A stretch of DNA of 64,000 nucleotides from Macrostomum lignano. Taxonomy: Eukaryota. Within the stretch, counting starts at the first letter, position 1; each line of letters begins with the position of its first letter. Positions 49,601 to 58,896 of this stretch are shown here, in pieces. The stretch spans positions 1-64,000 of the forward strand of contig NIVC01002865.1 of NCBI GenBank assembly GCA_002269645.1. Reading direction: 5' to 3'. Below the pieces are notes generated by a model. It worked only from the letters and a program-made list of their open reading frames with translations. It did no database searches and was not told the origin of the DNA. The position numbers and the translations under genes are program-made.

Positions 49601-51570
49601 GGTTGACAGATTTTTTAAGATTGCAAGGCTTATGGGGCATTGCTAAGATGTCAAGGGGGTTGATATGCTAAGGCTTGTGGGGGGATTTTCTGACATGTCA
49701 AGGCTTACAAGGTATAATGCAAAGAGACGCTTACATGTAGTTTATTAAAAAAACTTGTACTGCATTTTTTTGGCTCCCCAACGGGGGGCGCTGATTGCTA
49801 GTGATAGGCCTATCTATGACCAAAAGCTCAGAGTCAGACTATGTCTACATTGCTAGGAGCCAATCTGTGCCCAACACTAGGCTGCCTATCAATAATAATG
49901 GCCATAATTGGCTTTGGCTACAATTAGGAAGCCAAAAAGCCAAGAGGCCTAGAAGGGTGCAAATGCAAAGGTATAGGCCTATATGATATAGGCCATAGTC
50001 TAGATCATGGCAAGCCTATGCCAAAAAGAAAATTCAAGTTTTTTTTAATTTTAGGCCCCTATATCAATGTAAAGTAAAAAAATATTTCGTAAATCCAAAG
50101 GTTGTTTATGCATCAATTTTTTCAAAGAATATATATTTTTTAGAAATGTAAATAAGATTTTTATTAAACGCTAAATGGCTAAAAGCCTATTCTTTGGTAA
50201 AAAGTGATATTTTTTATTTTTTATTTATTTTTTAAATTTCATTAATATTTTCTACTTTAGTTTCCAATTATTTTTAAAAAGCTTTTGTTGGTTGATATTG
50301 AACTATAGGATTAATAGGATTACATTAGCCCTAAGTTGGCTATTTTTTGTATGCCAACTATGTACAGTTCAAATATATGCCTAACATCAAAATTCTATCC
50401 CTGCATTTCAATAGGTACAACCCCTATTGGAATGAGTTTCAAAAACCCGCGGACACGCGACATGGGTGCCAAAATTGTGCCTTCAAAAGCGCGATGCGAC
50501 TCCAAATTTTGTTGTCTGGGAGGTGGCGATGCGCGACGCAACACTGATGTCTATTGAACAAATGACCGGGGGGAGGACACCACAGCAGCCACGTTGTAAT
50601 TGACAATTCCCATTCTGCTGTTCACTCTCGACACCAAGACCATGGGGCAACAGACAAGAGTATTCCTTTCAACTTTGCGGAAATAGAAATGAAATTTAAA
50701 AAGAATAAACAGTAAAACAACAAAGGTTACAACACTTAGAAAAACAGCGCACACATTGTAACTAACAAGTAACATTTCTAAAAATTATATTTGAAGTATT
50801 AGTTATTATACTTATAAGTATTATATGTATTATATTTATAATAATTAGTTATTATACTATATTAATAGAAAACTATTAATATTGTTGAAATATTAAAAAA
50901 ACATATACTAAAAAAGAAACCTTAAAAAGTTATCAATGCATTTTTTTTAGAAAAAAAGCAACTGTTTTATCTAATAAATAAACTATAGCTTGATTAATAA
51001 TGATCTAAGTTATAATTACTAAATAGTAATAAAAACTTTTTTCATATTAAATAAATCAAGTATTATATTGGTAAAGAGAATAGTAGATTTAAATTAAACA
51101 AAATTAAACTGTTTCAGAGGCAGATATTATCATTTTTAAGTCTATGGCTATTATATTTTATTTTTCTGATATATTCTTATAATATCAAAGCTGTTATAAT
51201 CTATACAATCAAAATTCAGTTCTTTTTTAGCTTTATCTTTAATGCATTAAATAGAAAATATCTTTGTTCTTTTGTTAAGTTTCAAGGCAAAAGCTAGAAG
51301 TAATGAGTAATAATAGTAATTTATATATTCTTTTTGCATAAATTTTGAAGCAAATGGCTAGGTGAATTCATAGGTTGCACCCAAGCATGTTTCGTTGGAA
51401 AAGTATTCTTTCTTTCTAGTTTATATTTGCTTTTAATCTATGTAATTGCATTAAAAAGTTTTTTTTGCAAAAAAACTTTTTTATTTAACTTTGCCTCTTG
51501 TATGCATATTGGTTAAGTATTGGGACACTAGGACAAATGCATTTTTACATTTGCATTTATCATACATGTG

Positions 51571-51671
51571 CAACCTTGGGATTCACTTGGCCATTTCTAT
51601 TGGCAACACACACATGTAAGTTGCTATTGGCTGAGAGCAGTCATGTGACTACTATTCTGTCCAATAGCAAC

Positions 51672-51732
<61 letters not shown>

Positions 51733-51765
51733 CAATAGAAATGGCCAGGTGAATCCCTAGGTTGT
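51571..51765. repeat. Foldback element with (TG)n expanded in one arm
   Basis: Arms 51571-51630 and 51661-51765 are reverse complements apart from (CA)3-4 versus (TG)~26. Confidence 0.85.
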
Positions 51766-52081: not shown

Positions 52082-54027
52082 ATGGTCAAGGGAGACAAGC
52101 GCAAGTGGAAGGAGGGCTTCTTCGATAAGCTGACTACCCTATTGAATGAGTACTCCAAGGCTTTCATTGTTAGCGTGGACAATGTCGGCTCCAAACAGAT
52201 GCAGCAGATCCGACAGTCGATGAGAAACGAAGCGGTGATCCTTATTGGCAAGAACACCATGATAAGGAAAGTGGTCCGAGCCATGCTAGACGATCATCCC
52301 ACTCTGGAGAAGCTGCTGCCTCACGTCCGACTCAATGTTGGCTTCGTGTTCACCAACTTGGATCTGAACGATGTGCGCACAAAGATCGAAGCTAACCAGG
52401 TTGCCGCCCCGGCCAGGGCCGGCTCCATCGCCCCCTGCGATGTAGTTGTGCCAGCTCAGAATACCGGCCTGGGACCGGAGAAGACCAGCTTCTTTCAGGC
52501 CTTGAACATCCAGACTAAGATTACTCGCGGCACTATTGAAATCTTGTCTGACGTGCCGCTGATTAAAAAGAATACAAAGGTAATTTTTTTATTGATTGAT
52601 GCCCTCGCAAAAATGCCCTTACCTACTTACTCTTTTTACAGTAGTAAAATTGGCGTTTTTTGTTGTAAGCTGCACCTCAATCTCAGTTTGTTTGCATACG
52701 CGAGACCCTTGCCAGGCCGATAAAAATTTTGGTTTTCCTCTTGCCCTCTTGTGTCTGACTTTGACCTCTCCTTACTGCTCTCTCATTGGCTGAGCTAGAT
52801 TGGGCCTGCCCCTAGGCTGAGTTTCGTCCGTCTGACTTTGCACTCTCTCCTTACTGCTCTCTCATTGGCTGAGCTAGATTGGGCCTGTCCCCTAGGCTGA
52901 GTTTCGTCCGTCTGACTTTGCACTCTCTCCTTACTGCTCTCTCATTTGCTGAGCTAGATTGGGCCTGCGGCCCTGCCCCTAGGCTGAGTTTCGTCCGTCT
53001 GACTGCACTCTTTACTGCTCTCTCATTGGCTGAGCTAGATTGGGCCTGCGGCCCTGCCCCTAGGCTGAGTTTCGTCCGTCTGACTGCACTCTTTACTGCT
53101 CTCTCATTGGCTGAGCTAGATTGGGCCTGCGGCCCTGCCCCTAGGCTGAGTTTCGTCCGTCTGACTGCACTCTTTACTGCTCTCTCATTGGCTGAGCTAG
53201 ATTGGGCCTGCGGCCCTGCCCCTAGGCTGAGTTTCGTCCGTCTGACTTTGCACTTCCCTCCTGCTGGGCAGAGACGCCAAAAATGGACTTTTTGTAATTC
53301 CTGGCAGTCTCAATCAGCAGGAGGCAGATTAATTAACCAATGCGGAATTTAATCACCGATTTATTTTCTGTTAATTTTGAGTTAATCGGTTTCATGCTTC
53401 CGCAACATTCGAAATTGGCAAATTCTGCTGCAGATATTGTATAAATCAAATTCATGGAAAAAAACTTATTTTATGCTAGCTTACTTGATAATAACGCTAA
53501 CGCTAAGTATGCTAATAACTTTGTTGCATTAGTTTACATACTTTAAATTATAAACCTTACGATATGTACTTTATTAGGTCGGCCAGTCTGAAGCCACCCT
53601 GCTGAACATGCTGAAGATCTCGCCGTTCTCTTACGGCCTGAGGATCCGTCAGGTGTACGACAACGGCAGCGTGTTCGGTCCGCAGGTGCTTGACATCCGC
53701 GACGAGGACATTGTGGCCAGATTCTTGGCCGGCAGCCGCCGAATCGCTGCCCTGTCCCTGCAGCTGGGCACGCCAACTCTGGCTTCCGCTCCGCATTCGA
53801 TTGTCAACGCGTTCAAGCGTTGCCTAGCGGTTGCCGTGGAAACTGACTACGATTTCCCGCTAGCCGATAAGGTCAAGGAGTACATTAAAAATCCTGACAA
53901 GTTTGCTGCGGCTGCCCCGGCTGCTGCCGCCGCCGCCCCAGCCGCTGCCGCCGCTAAGAAAGAAGAAAAGAAGGAGGAAAGCTCCGAGGAGTCCGACGAC
54001 GATATGGGAATGTCGCTGTTCGATTAA
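52082..54027 (+). CDS. RPLP0: 60S acidic ribosomal protein P0 (uL10), 2 coding exons, 315 aa
   Basis: Exons are 52082-52579 and 53578-54027 (phase 0, GT-AG). Motifs: [47 protein letters not shown] and the [13 protein letters not shown] tail. AATAAA is at 54258. Confidence 0.98.
52750..53255. repeat. ~75-84-bp minisatellite, 6-7 copies, in the RPLP0 intron
   Basis: Direct reading. Confidence 0.93.
53256..53410 (+). ncRNA. Box H/ACA snoRNA, copy 1 (intronic in RPLP0); predicted dual guide for LSU rRNA
   Basis: Hairpin, then H box AGATTA (53326), hairpin, then ACA (53405) plus 3 nt. Both pockets are 14 nt from their boxes. They are complementary to the conserved LSU sequences UGAUU-UC-UGCCCAG and GCAUGAA-UG-GAUUAA. 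Confidence 0.9.
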
Positions 54028-54561
54028 CTCTAAAAGCCAGGAATTCCACGCCAAACTGATGGATTTGTTTGCTCTGGGTTGGAACTTTTACTAAAAACTG
54101 GTATCGTTGCTGTCTTCTAGTGTCTGTTTTTGGGTGCCGCGGGCCTGTGCGCCAGCTCACACTGCAGCCCGGGGGGGCGGGTCCGCTGTGGCACTCTGGC
54201 TGATTGATTGATGCCTGAGTAAAATGTTGCTTAAGAAGGAAATGATCACATAACAACAATAAAAAAGATTAAGCGTTGGCTTGCCGACTTTTGTGGTCAA
54301 AAAGTTTTTTGTGGATTGAAAAAGTATAGTCGCGCGTGTTGTCTTGCACTGATTTTATTTTTAACTGCTTGTTAGGTTAAATTTGTCATTTAGATGCTTA
54401 GTAAGTTAGTTGTTTAGTCTTCTAGTAGTTGTTTAGTTAGTTAGCTAGCTAGTCAGTCAGTTAGTTAGCTAGTTAGTCAGCCAGTTAGTTATTTAGTTAG
54501 TTAGTCAGTTTATTCGACACAGCGCTAAACAATAAGAATTGTTTTTAATAGGCTTAACTTT

Positions 54562-54715
54562 GCCTCCTGCTGGGCAGAGACGCCAAAATGGATTTTCTGT
54601 AGTTCCTGGCAGTCCCAATCAGCAGGAGGCAGATTAATTAACCAATGCGGAATTTAATCACCGATTTATTTTCTGTTAATTTTGAGTTAATCGGTTTCAT
54701 GCTTCCATAACATCC
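54562..54715 (+). ncRNA. Box H/ACA snoRNA paralog, copy 2 (slightly degenerate 3' stem)
   Basis: Near-identical to copy 1, with H box at 54631 and ACA at 54710. TTCCATA replaces TTCCGCA. Confidence 0.8.
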
Positions 54716-54902
54716 TAGTTTTTTTTTAAATTAAAAACAAGTTCACGAGACATCCTTAAGTAAAGCTCTTTAAGGGCTCTCAGGTGAACTATAGTCCATT
54801 TAGCCCACTGTACTGTCAAAAATGTTGCCCATCAATATTATAATCTGTAGTTAGTTTGAGACTTCTACAAAGACTAGTCAGTCGGTATAAAACCAGGCAG
54901 CC

Positions 54903-55063
54903 GCCTCCTGCTGGGCAGAGACGCCAAAATGAACTTTCTGTAATTCCTGGCAGCCTCAATCAGCAGGAGGCAGATCAACCTAACTTTAATCGCGGAATTT
55001 AATCACCGATTTATCTTCTGTTAATTGTTGTGAGTTAATCGGTTTCATGCTTCCGCAACAGTG
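54903..55063 (+). ncRNA. Box H/ACA snoRNA paralog, copy 3
   Basis: H box AGATCA at 54972 and ACA at 55058; the guide sequences are intact. Confidence 0.85.
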
Positions 55064-55100
55064 TTGGCGCCCACTAAATATATGCGGTAGAGAATGCAGC

Positions 55101-55635
55101 ACGAGAAGTATTGGTTTTGTCAGCCTAACTGAGAATAAAGCCATCCAAAGTGAGAATCCTTCTGAGCCATGCTAGTCCTGAGCCATATGACTAGCCAATA
55201 GCTTGAACGGAATAACGGAAACAGGAACACACTGGATGATACAGTACAGTAAAGTAAAGAGTTAAAATAGCCGTCCCTCAATGCACTGCCCAAAGAGTCG
55301 TCTGCAATGCAGGTCCCACGCGGCAGCCTTCCCAGCAGTGACTGTGTCGTCAATCGCTTCGCGCGCCTCCCTCTCTAACAGCATGTTCCTGTTTCCGTTA
55401 TTCCGTTCAAGCTATTGGCTAGTCATATGGCTCAGAAGGTATAAAAATAAAAGAATACGACGCATAGACCAATCGATTCTCACATTGGATGGCTTTTTAT
55501 CACTTTGCTTGTCCTTTATAGTCTATGGCCCATAGACTAAGGCTGCACGCAGCCAGGCCCTTCGCAGTCAGCGTAGGCAGGATTCTCACTTTGGATGGCT
55601 TTATTCTCAGTTAGGCTGACAAAAGCAATACTCGT
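55101..55635. repeat. Large imperfect inverted repeat / foldback between snoRNA copies 3 and 4
   Basis: 55101-55160 is the reverse complement of about 55578-55635. About 55170-55232 is the reverse complement of about 55383-55440. Confidence 0.85.
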
Positions 55636-55932
55636 ATTTTATGCAACCAGCTATCTATGGCCAAAACTGCCTGATAGTTAAGCCAAGCAAGTTAGAGACA
55701 GAGAGAGAGAGAGGGAGAAAGAGATCGCTGCAAGGCGCGAGTATCCTTCGTGCAGATGTCTATGGCCGAATTATCAACTTGGTTTCCTTTGTCTATGAAC
55801 AAGACCAAATCTATACTGCTGCTAAATGGGAATTCTCAACGTCTTCCCATCTTGGCAAGCAAAAGAGATATAAACGCACACCTTTGCTAAAACTAAAGCG
55901 AAAACAATTATTGCTGGTATCTTTAAAATTTT

Positions 55933-56083
55933 CCTCCTGCTGGGCAGAGACGCCAAAGGAACTTTTTGTGTTATCTCTGGCAGCCTCAGTCAGCAGGAGG
56001 CAGATTAACTAACCAATGTGGAATTTAATCACCGATTTATCTCTTCAAAGTGAGTTAATCGGTTTCATACGTCCACAACATTG
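55933..56083 (+). ncRNA. Box H/ACA snoRNA paralog, copy 4
   Basis: H box AGATTA at 56002 and ACA at 56078. There is a compensatory stem change, TGTGGA/TCCACA versus TGCGGA/TCCGCA. Confidence 0.82.
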
Positions 56084-56164
56084 TTTTTTTAAGCGTAGTT
56101 ATTATCAATTATTAATTTAGTATGATAATGGTGCTATCGATAAACGAATTGTGTTAATGTATTC

Positions 56165-56785
56165 ATGCAACTAAATCGCTCTTCGACATTCTCGAAGGTC
56201 GCGGTCGCTCTGGCAGCATTTGCCAATCGCCGCAATGGCCACTTTGCAAGGTCCTCTTCTTGCAACTATAGTTTTGGCAAGCGCACCCTCTGTGTAATGG
56301 CTTTAATCAACAATAATACTAATAACAACGCCAATTGTAGTAGTAGTAGCGGCAATAGTTCAGACAAAACCAACGACAAGAAGTTAGGACAGCGCACAAA
56401 TGCCGAATGGAAAGCGCTGCTACCTTTAGACGTTTACCTTGTGACCCGTTGCGGCGATACGGAGCCACCTTATAGCGGCCTGTACACTGACTTCTTTGCT
56501 CCGGGTGTCTACCTGTGCGCCTGCTGCAACGAAGCGCTGTTCTCGTCCGACGCAAAGTTCTCGTCCGCCTGCGGTTGGCCGGCGTTCTTTGACTGTCGCG
56601 ATAGTTCGGTAAAGCGCAAAGCCGACTCAAGTCACGGTATGCAGCGTGTCGAGGTGTTGTGCGCCAATTGCGACGCCCATCTTGGTCACGTGTTCCCGGA
56701 TGGGCCGCCGCCAACTGGGGAACGTTATTGTATTAATAGTCTGGCGTTGGAGTTCCAGCCCGCCAAGAAGCCGGATGCTAGTTGA
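56165..56785 (+). CDS. msrB: Methionine-R-sulfoxide reductase (Cys-type, Zn-binding), intronless, 206 aa
   Basis: Motifs: TEPPYSG, G.YLCACC, LF.SDAKF.SACGWPAF, RVEVLCANCDAHLGHVF.DGP.PTGERYCINS. Confidence 0.96.
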   Translation: MQLNRSSTFSKVAVALAAFANRRNGHFARSSSCNYSFGKRTLCVMALINNNTNNNANCSSSSGNSSDKTNDKKLGQRTNAEWKALLPLDVYLVTRCGDTEPPYSGLYTDFFAPGVYLCACCNEALFSSDAKFSSACGWPAFFDCRDSSVKRKADSSHGMQRVEVLCANCDAHLGHVFPDGPPPTGERYCINSLALEFQPAKKPDAS

Positions 56786-57129
56786 CTTCAGGTGTGTCTG
56801 ACCTACTGTCTTCATCTTGTGCATAGAAATCAGCAAGTTTTTCCTAAATTTCATGCTCATCGGATACTACTATTTTAATAGTCGAAGAATTTTTTTCTTA
56901 TTTTTGTTTAATTTTATTCACTTTACTGTATAACATTGCCTTTCATATTCTATTTTTTCGCTCATCGTTAATTAGTACAATGTTTATTAAAATGTTTACT
57001 AAAATAATTATACGTTTGATAAATATTTGCTTGCATACTTGAGAAAAGCGAGATTATAAAAAATCTATTTTAAAGCTCTTAGACTTGATTCATTTGAGCG
57101 CGGCAAAATTATTTGTTATCAACAAATTA

Positions 57130-57381
57130 CCCAGGATTTGTCAGCAGAGCATTGCCTTGTATGATTTTATTTTTCAATACGCTTCATGGCTGCGTCTGCG
57201 TTACAATTCTGGTAGATTGAAATAAAACCAATTTTCCACGGCCTTGAGCAGTTAATTGGGTGCCAGTGCGAGCACGTCGACTGTCTGCGCTCTCTCTTGC
57301 AGAAGTGTTTATTAGTGCTCATTGAACTTTTGTACTTCACTGGATAAGCCTGCTGCTTAGTAAACAACAGGGCCGACAGAT
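57130..57381 (+). ncRNA. U19/SNORA74/snR191-like H/ACA RNA, copy A
   Basis: The 5' hairpin is CCAGGA-TTTGTCA-GCAG...CTGC-GTTACAA-TTCTGG, with pocket GUCA/GUUAC matching LSU GUAAC-UA-UGAC. The hinge is AGATTG/AAATAA. The 3' domain is closed by CGGCCTT/AGGGCCG and followed by ACA (57376). Confidence 0.75.
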
Positions 57382-57939
57382 AAGTAATATATTGTAGATG
57401 ATCGATTGGGCTTTGGGTTTTTATTTGTAGCTAGTTAGAAACTCTAATTTGGACAAGAAATATTTTGTTTACGAAGCTATACTTGTTTAATTGAATTGAA
57501 TTCTTTCTCCTTGTCTAACCACGCCCAGCGCATATAGCCCGCCTATTAAGCTGTAAAAAGCCCTTGTATAATATGCCACGATAAATGGACAGAGAAGATG
57601 CGCTTTGGCTGGCTGAATACATCACGCGATTGCTTAGGGTTAATTGTTCTGTTCCAATACTCATAGTTGATCTCAGAACACTCGTTTTTAATGCCTCGGC
57701 GTGGGGGTGTCGTTGAGTTTGGAACAATTTAAACTGGATCAAACTAGCTATTAACTAGCAGGTTACTGTTCTCTATACAGTGCTCAGGAGTTCTCGGGTT
57801 GGGCGTATCTAGGTTTTGTTTACTAGCCTATAGGCGTACTTTGACGTCAGTAAATGCTATTCATTTGTGCAAACCTGTGTGTAGTTTAGATATGGTGCAG
57901 TTCGTTAGGATAGAATGCTTTTATTAAAGAATTGGTGCT

Positions 57940-58475
57940 ATGGCTCATTTAGTTAAGATAACGGTGTATTTAGTTAAGCTATGGTTCATTTAGTTAAGAT
58001 AACGGTGTATTTAGTTAAGCTATGGTTCATTTAGTTAAGATAACGGTGTATTTAGTTAAGCTATGGTTCATTTAGTTAAGATAACGGTGTATTTAGTTAA
58101 GCTATGGTTCATTTAGTTAAGATAACGGTGTATTTAGTTAAGCTATGGTTCATTTAGTTAAGATAACGGTGCATTTAGTTAAGATATGGTTCATTTAGTT
58201 AAGATAACGGTGTATTTAGTTAAGATAACGGTGTATTTAGTTAAGATATGGTTCATTTAGTTAAGATAACGGTGTATTTAGTTAAGCTATAGTTCATTTA
58301 GTTAGGATAACGATTCATTTAGTTAAGATAACGGTGCATTTAGTTAAGATAATGAGTCATTTAGTTTTATAACGGTGCATTTAGTTAAGATAACGGTGCA
58401 TTTAGTTAAGATAATGAGTCATTTAGTTTTATAACGGTGCATTTAGTTAAGATAACGGTGCATTTAGTTAGAATA
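57940..58475. repeat. 41-bp heterodimeric minisatellite (21+20 bp units sharing ATTTAGTTAAG)
   Basis: Direct reading. Confidence 0.93.
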
Positions 58476-58617
58476 TAATGCATTAGGATACAATATAATA
58501 CAGTATACTTATTTTAACAAAGTAACTCTATCGTCTGTCTACCGAAAGATCAAACAATCAAAGACTATGAAAACAAATTATAATTAGTAAATTTATATAA
58601 CCTTGCAAAGATTTATA

Positions 58618-58896
58618 ACCAGAACTTTGTCAGCAGGCCATTGCCCTTCATTTATTTGTTGTTTAATTGGCTGCGACTGCGTTACAATTCTGGTAGATTA
58701 TTAAGAGACACGATGTGTTGAGCATTGTTAATCTCTTACGGCCTCGTATCGGACTTGCTTAACTGCCTGTGTGTTTCAGCACCTAGCTTGCACTAGTTAA
58801 GTTGTTGCTCGCACAAAATCTTTGAGCAAAAACTTTTCAAGCTGGATAGTAAATTATAAGTCACTGGCGGTTTTCTAATGTCCTGGGCCGACATAT
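58618..58896 (+). ncRNA. U19/SNORA74/snR191-like H/ACA RNA, copy B
   Basis: Perfect lower stem ACCAGAA/TTCTGGT with the same pocket, 14 nt from H box AGATTA (58695). The 3' domain is closed by CGGCCT/GGGCCG, with ACA at 58891. Confidence 0.8.

Follow-up and report, generated by a model that had tools for sequence, protein, structure and literature searches.

Predicted H/ACA snoRNA genes of two families clustered in and downstream of RPLP0 in Macrostomum lignano

What is encoded by a run of similar elements that begins in an intron of the ribosomal protein gene RPLP0 of the flatworm Macrostomum lignano and continues past the next gene, msrB, and how might RNAs be produced from such an arrangement? 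The run lies in a stretch of 64,000 nucleotides (nt) of contig NIVC01002865.1 (assembly GCA_002269645.1, positions 1 to 64,000 of the forward strand), which we call the window and whose positions are used throughout. Six elements of the box H/ACA small nucleolar RNA (snoRNA) type, all on the + strand, span 53257-58896. Judged on sequence, they are genuine, formerly unannotated H/ACA snoRNA genes of a known RNA class with known, conserved predicted targets. We consider it probable (roughly 80%) that the cluster as a whole represents M. lignano H/ACA snoRNA genes with the targets described below, locally amplified in and downstream of RPLP0. This estimate covers the identity of the RNAs and their targets and excludes the route of their biogenesis.

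Comparison by blastn and repeat finding divided the elements into two families, family A with four copies of ~152 nt and family B with two copies of ~250-280 nt, and revealed no further copies of either family in the 64-kb window. The six elements are:

53257-53410, + strand, A1: intronic; fold z = -5.5; H box AGAUUA at 53326-53331, ACA at 53405-53407.
54563-54715, + strand, A2: guide arms intact; 3' lower stem with a C.A mismatch and a G.U pair, 5' upper stem with one A.C.
54904-55063, + strand, A3: H box AGAUCA; hinge 4 nt longer; guide arms intact.
55933-56083, + strand, A4: compensatory C-G to U-A change in the 3' lower stem; altered guide arms.
57130-57381, + strand, B1: U19/SNORA74-like (RF00090, 21.8 bits, E = 0.006); ACA at 57376-57378.
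58618-58896, + strand, B2: RF00090, 23.3 bits, E = 0.002; H box AGAUUA at 58695-58700, ACA at 58891-58893.

A1 lies inside the RPLP0 intron, 167 nt before its 3' splice site. Three copies, A2-A4, occupy the interval from the RPLP0 poly(A) signal (AATAAA, 54258) to msrB, and B1 and B2 follow msrB. An earlier sequence-only reading of this DNA had proposed six same-strand H/ACA-type elements in two families, one intronic, three between the genes and two after msrB. The number, strand and grouping of the elements are borne out by blastn, repeat finding and folding, and their placement by the coordinates, and the outer limits given in that reading fit the first base of A1 and the third nucleotide past the ACA of B2. 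All six elements fold more stably than mononucleotide shuffles, with z-scores of -3.0 to -5.5 for family A and -2.1 to -2.6 for family B. An ACA directly follows the 3' hairpin in every element; in H/ACA snoRNAs this triplet stands 3 nt from the end of the RNA.

All four family A copies have the hairpin-hinge-hairpin arrangement of H/ACA RNAs, with an ANANNA H box in the hinge. The first hairpin consists of a 10-11-bp lower stem (CCUCCUGCUG/CAGCAGGAGG) and an upper stem, and is followed by the H box AGAUUA (AGAUCA in A3). The second hairpin has the lower stem GCGGAA/UUCCGC and the upper stem ACCGAUU/AAUCGGU and is followed by A-ACA. The pocket strands of A1 are CUGGGCA (53264-53270) and AAUCA (53312-53316) in the 5' hairpin, and UUAAUC (53349-53354) and UUCAUGC (53391-53397) in the 3' hairpin. 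The A copies in the window are 83-95% identical to one another, and alignment places this similarity between the first base of the 5' stem and a point 3-6 nt past the ACA, with unrelated flanks on both sides.

The whole cluster is also present on two paralogous contigs, with five A copies, B1 and B2 in one locus (L126/L127) and four A copies, B1 and B2 in the other (L128). Copy number is therefore polymorphic between paralogs or haplotypes. The extra copy (L126, 8525-9022) corresponds to a ~342-bp tandem duplication that comprises the snoRNA and its spacer. In an alignment of the 13 family A copies from the three loci (the window, L126 and L128), stems, H boxes and ACA are invariant or almost so. 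The most conserved parts are the boxes and the guide arms: the boxes and all four arms are unchanged except for three single changes, two of which (CUGGGCA to CUGGGUA, and AAUCA to AGUCA) retain pairing with the target via G.U. The second of these is found in the 5' guide arm of A4, which has one G.U to its target. One lower-stem pair covaries (C-G in four copies, U-A in six).

Predicted targets were sought in ribosomal RNA genes (rDNA) on metagenome contigs of other eukaryotes. At least 120 such contigs were found by an exact match to a 63-nt core of the large subunit (LSU) rRNA, and complete small subunit (SSU), 5.8S and LSU units were delimited by Rfam in four of them; a scan of viral contigs with the same 63-mer gave no match. 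The target scan took every pocket position, box distances of 13-17 and every U of the SSU, 5.8S and LSU rRNAs. In two unrelated rDNAs, the top-ranked target of the family A 5' hairpin was the U in 5'-UGAUU-U-C-UGCCCAG-3', equivalent to yeast U2191, and that of the 3' hairpin was the U in 5'-GCAUGAA-U-G-GAUUAA-3', equivalent to yeast U2314. Both target uridines are exactly 14 nt from the box, with pairings of 5+7-9 bp in the 5' pocket and 7+6 bp in the 3' pocket. H/ACA guides pair on either side of a U-N dinucleotide and hold the target U 14-16 nt from the H or ACA box. Shuffled guide arms reached the observed score in 0 of 300 cases for U2191 and in 1 of 300 for U2314. The exception to this top ranking was the A2 5' hairpin, whose guide arms are intact and which was excluded by the upper-stem filter of the scan because of its A.C mismatch in the upper stem. 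The sequence-only reading had named the same two uridines for family A, and both came out on top of this unbiased scan at the canonical distance of 14 nt.

Yeast numbering was anchored on the helix 69 loop, whose U2258 and U2260 correspond to E. coli 1915 and 1917. Relative to this anchor, the two family A sites lie 67 nt upstream and 56 nt downstream, which identifies them as U2191 and U2314, and the spacings among the three target sites (123 and 67 nt) agree with the yeast numbering. The exact target string was found in 90 of 116 evaluable rDNA contigs for the U2191 site, in 77 of 115 for the U2314 site (GGAUUAA) and in 118 of 120 for helix 69.

In yeast, U2191 and U2314 are pseudouridines made by snR32 and snR86, respectively (PMC5699541). 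Family A resembles these guides in being complementary to the same two LSU sites (25S Ψ2191 and Ψ2314), with bipartite pairing and a 14-nt spacing. It differs from them in that yeast uses two separate snoRNAs, whereas in M. lignano one 152-nt RNA carries both pockets, and so would merge the specificities of snR32 and snR86. Family A also has no significant sequence similarity to known guides of these sites and occurs in 4-5 tandem copies per locus. Its best Rfam match was plant snoR137 (25.6 bits, threshold 44), and SNORA48 (ACA48), the human counterpart of snR86, scored 12 bits (E = 2.9).

The B1 element has a lower stem CCAGGAUU/AAUUCUGG, the pocket strands GUCA (57140-57143) and GUUAC (57200-57204), an H-like box AGAUUG (57214-57219) and a long 3' hairpin closed by CGGCC/GGCCG. 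B2 has the same 5' hairpin and pocket and a different long 3' domain. The parts common to the two copies are the 5' hairpin (~76% identity over 82 nt), the closing stem CGGCC/GGCCG of the 3' domain and the ACA; their 3' domains are otherwise unalignable. SNORA74 (RF00090) was the sole Rfam family matched by both B copies in a permissive scan with a 1.9-kb search. In the alignment to that model, the B pocket strands UUGUCA and GUUACA and the CCAG/CUGG lower stem equal the RF00090 consensus. This 5' pocket is complementary to 5'-GUAAC-U-A-UGAC-3', part of the helix 69 loop, which places the equivalent of yeast U2258 (human 3741) 14 nt from the H box, and this uridine was the best B site in both rDNAs once the geometry was fixed.

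Based on these features, we regard family B as a divergent ortholog of U19/SNORA74/snR191 with a diverged 3' domain. The likeness to U19/snR191 comprises the 5' hairpin stem, the pocket strands, the AGA-type H box and the U2258 target, and extends to an unusually long 3' domain, snR191 being 274 nt in length. The U2258 target proposed for family B in the sequence-only reading fits by homology to the U19 pocket. U19 and snR191 guide two helix 69 pseudouridines, and their second stem-loop serves the neighbouring uridine, yeast 2260/human 3743 (PMC7075261).

Several observations weigh against this interpretation of the two families. Rfam at gathering thresholds gave no match in the whole window, and B2 (23.3 bits) and B1 (21.8 bits) stay well short of the 71 bits of RF00090, which is also a difference from U19/snR191. 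The rDNA in which the targets were found is not M. lignano 28S. With just 5+4 bp, the U2258 pairing is equalled by 18-23% of shuffles, so that the U2258 assignment rests on homology. The H box of B1 is AGAUUG at all three loci, departing from ANANNA at its last position, another difference from U19/snR191. No canonical pocket for U2260, U2264, U2266 or any further domain IV site was found in the 3' domains of B1 or B2, which further sets them apart from U19/snR191, as does the unlikeness of their two 3' domains. The best U2260 candidate in B1 (GGGU + UAGU, 4+4 bp) lies at a non-canonical 18 nt from the ACA, the UAGU of B2 lies 44 nt from the ACA without a partner arm, and the best 3' candidate of B2 is near the LSU 3' end (10+5-6 bp, including four G.U), with a 3' side that differs between the two rDNAs. 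The earlier suggestion that all of the RNAs are aimed at LSU domain IV consequently stands for the pockets that can be assigned (U2191, U2258 and U2314) and does not extend to the B1 and B2 3' domains.

Within family A, the third guide-arm change, a G to A in the 3' arm of A4 in the window (UUCAUAC), gives one target mismatch, and most copies have an A.C mismatch in the basal pair of the upper stem of the 5' hairpin. Covariation tests with four and with 13 copies were weak, with one compensatory pair, because the copies are closely similar. The 3' lower stem of A2 in the window is weakened; in the ortholog of A2, L126_b, a U-A pair restores this stem. Considering the weak stem of A2 and the arm mismatch of A4, some A copies may be decaying.

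We found no literature on flatworm or Macrostomum snoRNAs like families A and B. Flatworm snoRNAs are essentially unannotated, and these loci offer ready probes, in a model animal that regenerates and is amenable to transgenesis, for three highly conserved pseudouridines at the interface of the ribosomal subunits.

The homeologous RPLP0 locus (L001/L129, 88% nucleotide identity) has different downstream genes, and blastn detected no A or B copies there. It carries another H/ACA snoRNA:

L001 17118-17275; L129 12142-12299 and 22044-22201: double hairpin with H box AGAUUA and an ACA followed by GGA.

An ATTAAA signal lies downstream of RPLP0, and this snoRNA begins 9 nt beyond it, ~250 nt from the RPLP0 stop codon. 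In its 5' hairpin, the UUCAUGC arm recurs at 14 nt from the H box and would again address the U2314 equivalent. The best fit of its 3' hairpin is UUUGAU-U-U-UGAUUUU, the yeast Ψ2735/snR189 region. The re-use of a guide arm in the other hairpin illustrates a modular reshuffling of H/ACA pockets.

The biogenesis of the RNAs has to be considered against the two genes that the cluster adjoins:

52082-54027, + strand, RPLP0 (uL10): exon 1 at 52082-52579, intron at 52580-53577 (GT..AG), exon 2 at 53578-54027.
56165-56785, + strand, msrB (SelR domain): single exon; open reading frame (ORF) start at 56165/56168, internal Met at 56297.

The spliced RPLP0 ORF encodes 315 amino acids with 93% identity to M. 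lignano P0002 and is annotated as a 315-amino-acid gene in GCA_002269645.1; its AATAAA signal is at 54258-54263. The annotated msrB coding sequence is 5'-partial, from 56168, and its product matches contig NIVC01002865.1 with exact identity at the coordinates that it has in the window. RPLP0 and msrB are the only annotated genes within 10 kb on either side. They share the + strand, no gene on the other strand separates them, and in the paralogous locus the next + strand gene after B1 and B2 is a bHLH-PAS gene.

Following established H/ACA biology, the family A and B RNAs would assemble with dyskerin/Cbf5, Nop10, Nhp2 and Gar1 and isomerise their target uridines. A1 would be released from the spliced RPLP0 intron, and the other five would be trimmed from non-coding parts of RNA polymerase II transcripts across RPLP0-msrB. 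The sequence-only reading had suggested an operon-like or read-through unit or a non-coding host gene, and the hints for these layouts are circumstantial. The form that we favour, although tentatively and at somewhat under even odds, is read-through RNA or outron/intercistronic RNA upstream of spliced leader (SL) trans-splice sites, the outron being the part that is removed by SL trans-splicing of msrB and of the next gene. That all five non-intronic snoRNAs are excised from an RPLP0-driven polycistronic precursor, whether as read-through past the poly(A) signal, as intercistronic RNA or as an outron, we consider doubtful. If true, ribosome-modifying guides would ride on RPLP0 transcription, the homeolog's snoRNA just beyond the RPLP0 ATTAAA signal would furnish another case, and, as far as could be found, this would be a mode of snoRNA hosting undescribed for animals. 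The layout bears on whether organisms with SL trans-splicing process snoRNAs from outrons or intercistronic RNA, and this is the only potentially novel element of the locus, the rest being ordinary.

Near-identical isoforms at a host gene have precedents. Drosophila reportedly has clusters of H/ACA isoforms in host-gene introns (Huang et al. 2005), and ribosomal-protein genes host snoRNAs in animals. The M. lignano cluster is similar in that near-identical isoforms lie in the same orientation at RPLP0, with one copy intronic, but differs in that five of the six copies are outside annotated introns, past the poly(A) signal and flanking msrB. As same-strand arrays between or beside genes, the elements also resemble the polycistronic snoRNA clusters of plants and trypanosomatids and the SL operons of M. 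lignano (PMC8629364). The plant and trypanosomatid clusters usually mix distinct snoRNAs, whereas the M. lignano cluster repeats isoforms of two.

M. lignano resolves polycistronic pre-mRNAs by SL trans-splicing, and its operons have been defined by adjacent genes in the same orientation, with an SL trans-spliced downstream gene and an intergenic distance below 1000 bp after subtraction of repeats (PMC8629364). RPLP0 and msrB share the same orientation. In the transcriptome of a congener, the first 28 nt of RPLP0 equal the M. lignano SL, and msrB is a candidate for SL trans-splicing, which would make the locus resemble the known SL operons. The locus is unlike them in that its gap is above the distance criterion. 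Three points argue against read-through. The gap from 54258 to 56168 is ~1.9 kb, or ~1.25 kb after subtraction of a 520-bp insertion resembling a miniature inverted-repeat transposable element (MITE) and of a ~130-bp TTAG microsatellite, and thus exceeds 1 kb; the annotated transcriptional-unit prefix of RPLP0 differs from that of msrB; and the window copy has no AG at 56167. At 56168, the L128 locus reads TTGCAG/CAAC, with an AG acceptor, while the window reads CATG/CAAC and L126 reads GCTG/CAAC (slashes here and below mark the boundary). In the annotation pipeline, transcripts are split wherever there is a trans-splice site (PMC5730564), and the annotated msrB start raises the possibility that msrB may be SL trans-spliced. 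In L128, the sequence just upstream of the msrB start is TAATTTATTGCAG/CAAC, of which 11 contiguous nt equal the 3' end of the SL (AATTTATTGCATG). This SL-like stretch may be an ordinary acceptor or the relic of a retroposed SL-bearing mRNA. The window copy (56150-56170) has a genomic in-frame ATG exactly where the ATG of the SL would fall. At the homeologous locus L001, RPLP0 and the next gene carry a common transcriptional-unit prefix (Mlig000285 g3/g4), which hints at a precursor across the homeolog's snoRNA.

Alternatively, A2-A4, and perhaps B1 and B2, could each be hosted by an intron of a spliced non-coding gene of the UHG/GAS5 kind that has escaped annotation, situated between RPLP0 and msrB or overlapping both, with one snoRNA per intron as is the pattern in Drosophila and vertebrate host genes. 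By eye, a segment of ~41 nt in the A2-A3 spacer is bordered by plausible acceptor/donor pairs (...AAAAACAAG/TTCACGAG...CTCTCAG/GTGAAC, ~54742-54784) and a similar ...GCAG/CACGAGAAG follows A3, and the regular spacing of ~340-350 nt among A2, A3 and the extra L126 copy would suit such a gene. These splice sites are, however, merely at consensus level in AT-rich DNA, and the putative mini-exon has a 10-nt deletion in L126. The GenBank annotation of GCA_002269645.1 left out non-coding transcripts on purpose (PMC5730564), so the missing host gene annotation is uninformative. We consider a host gene of this kind unlikely.

Another explanation is that each non-intronic copy is its own transcription unit with a promoter, as are many snoRNA genes in C. 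elegans, yeast and plants. Five copies do lie outside annotated genes, and TATA-like strings are found upstream of A3 (TATAAAA), A4 (TTTAAAA) and B2 (TATATAA), but at -7 to -28, and such strings are expected by chance in DNA of ~40% GC. A search for a shared flanking motif around the six elements found none: sharing of 8-mers among the upstream or the downstream flanks did not exceed that in shuffles. The similarity between copies ends exactly at the RNA boundaries, indicating that no promoter was co-duplicated, and A1, almost identical to the other A copies, is clearly intronic and needs none. Independent transcription of this sort appears quite improbable.

It is far less credible that the elements only resemble H/ACA RNAs and make up a repeat without function, dispersed or tandem (a MITE, a short interspersed element or snoRNA-derived retrocopies), and we reject this identity. 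In its favour, repeats abound in the region (an 81-nt tandem repeat, a minisatellite and a MITE), retroposition could also give sharp copy boundaries, and A2, A4 and B1 have defects in stem, guide arm and H box, respectively. Against it, no copies were found outside the cluster in the 64-kb window or in the ~120 kb of paralogous loci examined, all copies point the same way, and they lack poly(A) tails and target-site duplications. In addition, two independent pockets each match a known, conserved site of pseudouridylation at a distance of exactly 14 nt, and the boxes and guide arms are the best-conserved parts across the 13 copies.

The MITE-like insertion lies among the predicted snoRNA genes without belonging to them and enlarges the A3-A4 spacing:

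55109-55628, no strand assigned: MITE-like insertion with ~55-nt terminal inverted repeats, between A3 and A4.

Both L126 and L128 lack exactly this element, which points to a recent insertion. Other repeats are found throughout the region. A ~81-nt tandem repeat of about six units occupies 52760-53250, in the RPLP0 intron just upstream of A1, and the same repeat occurs inverted downstream of RPLP0 in the homeolog (L001 17405-17712). A (TTAG)n-type microsatellite lies upstream of A2 (54380-54510) and a 20/41-nt minisatellite with ~21 register copies lies between B1 and B2 (57880-58500); the lengths of both differ among the three paralogous loci. Upstream of RPLP0, a near-perfect ~80-nt inverted repeat surrounds (GT)n at 51560-51760. 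The sub-threshold Rfam matches of this inverted repeat to miRNA families (mir-3149, 40.8 bits against a threshold of 100) are spurious.

The 120 best database relatives of msrB are bacterial or metagenomic MsrB proteins with 52-62% identity, several named as Burkholderiales and none named as eukaryotic. The bacterial type of the best relatives of this intronless gene may reflect database bias or an old horizontal transfer. The predicted protein has an N-terminal extension rich in R, S and A that resembles a targeting peptide.

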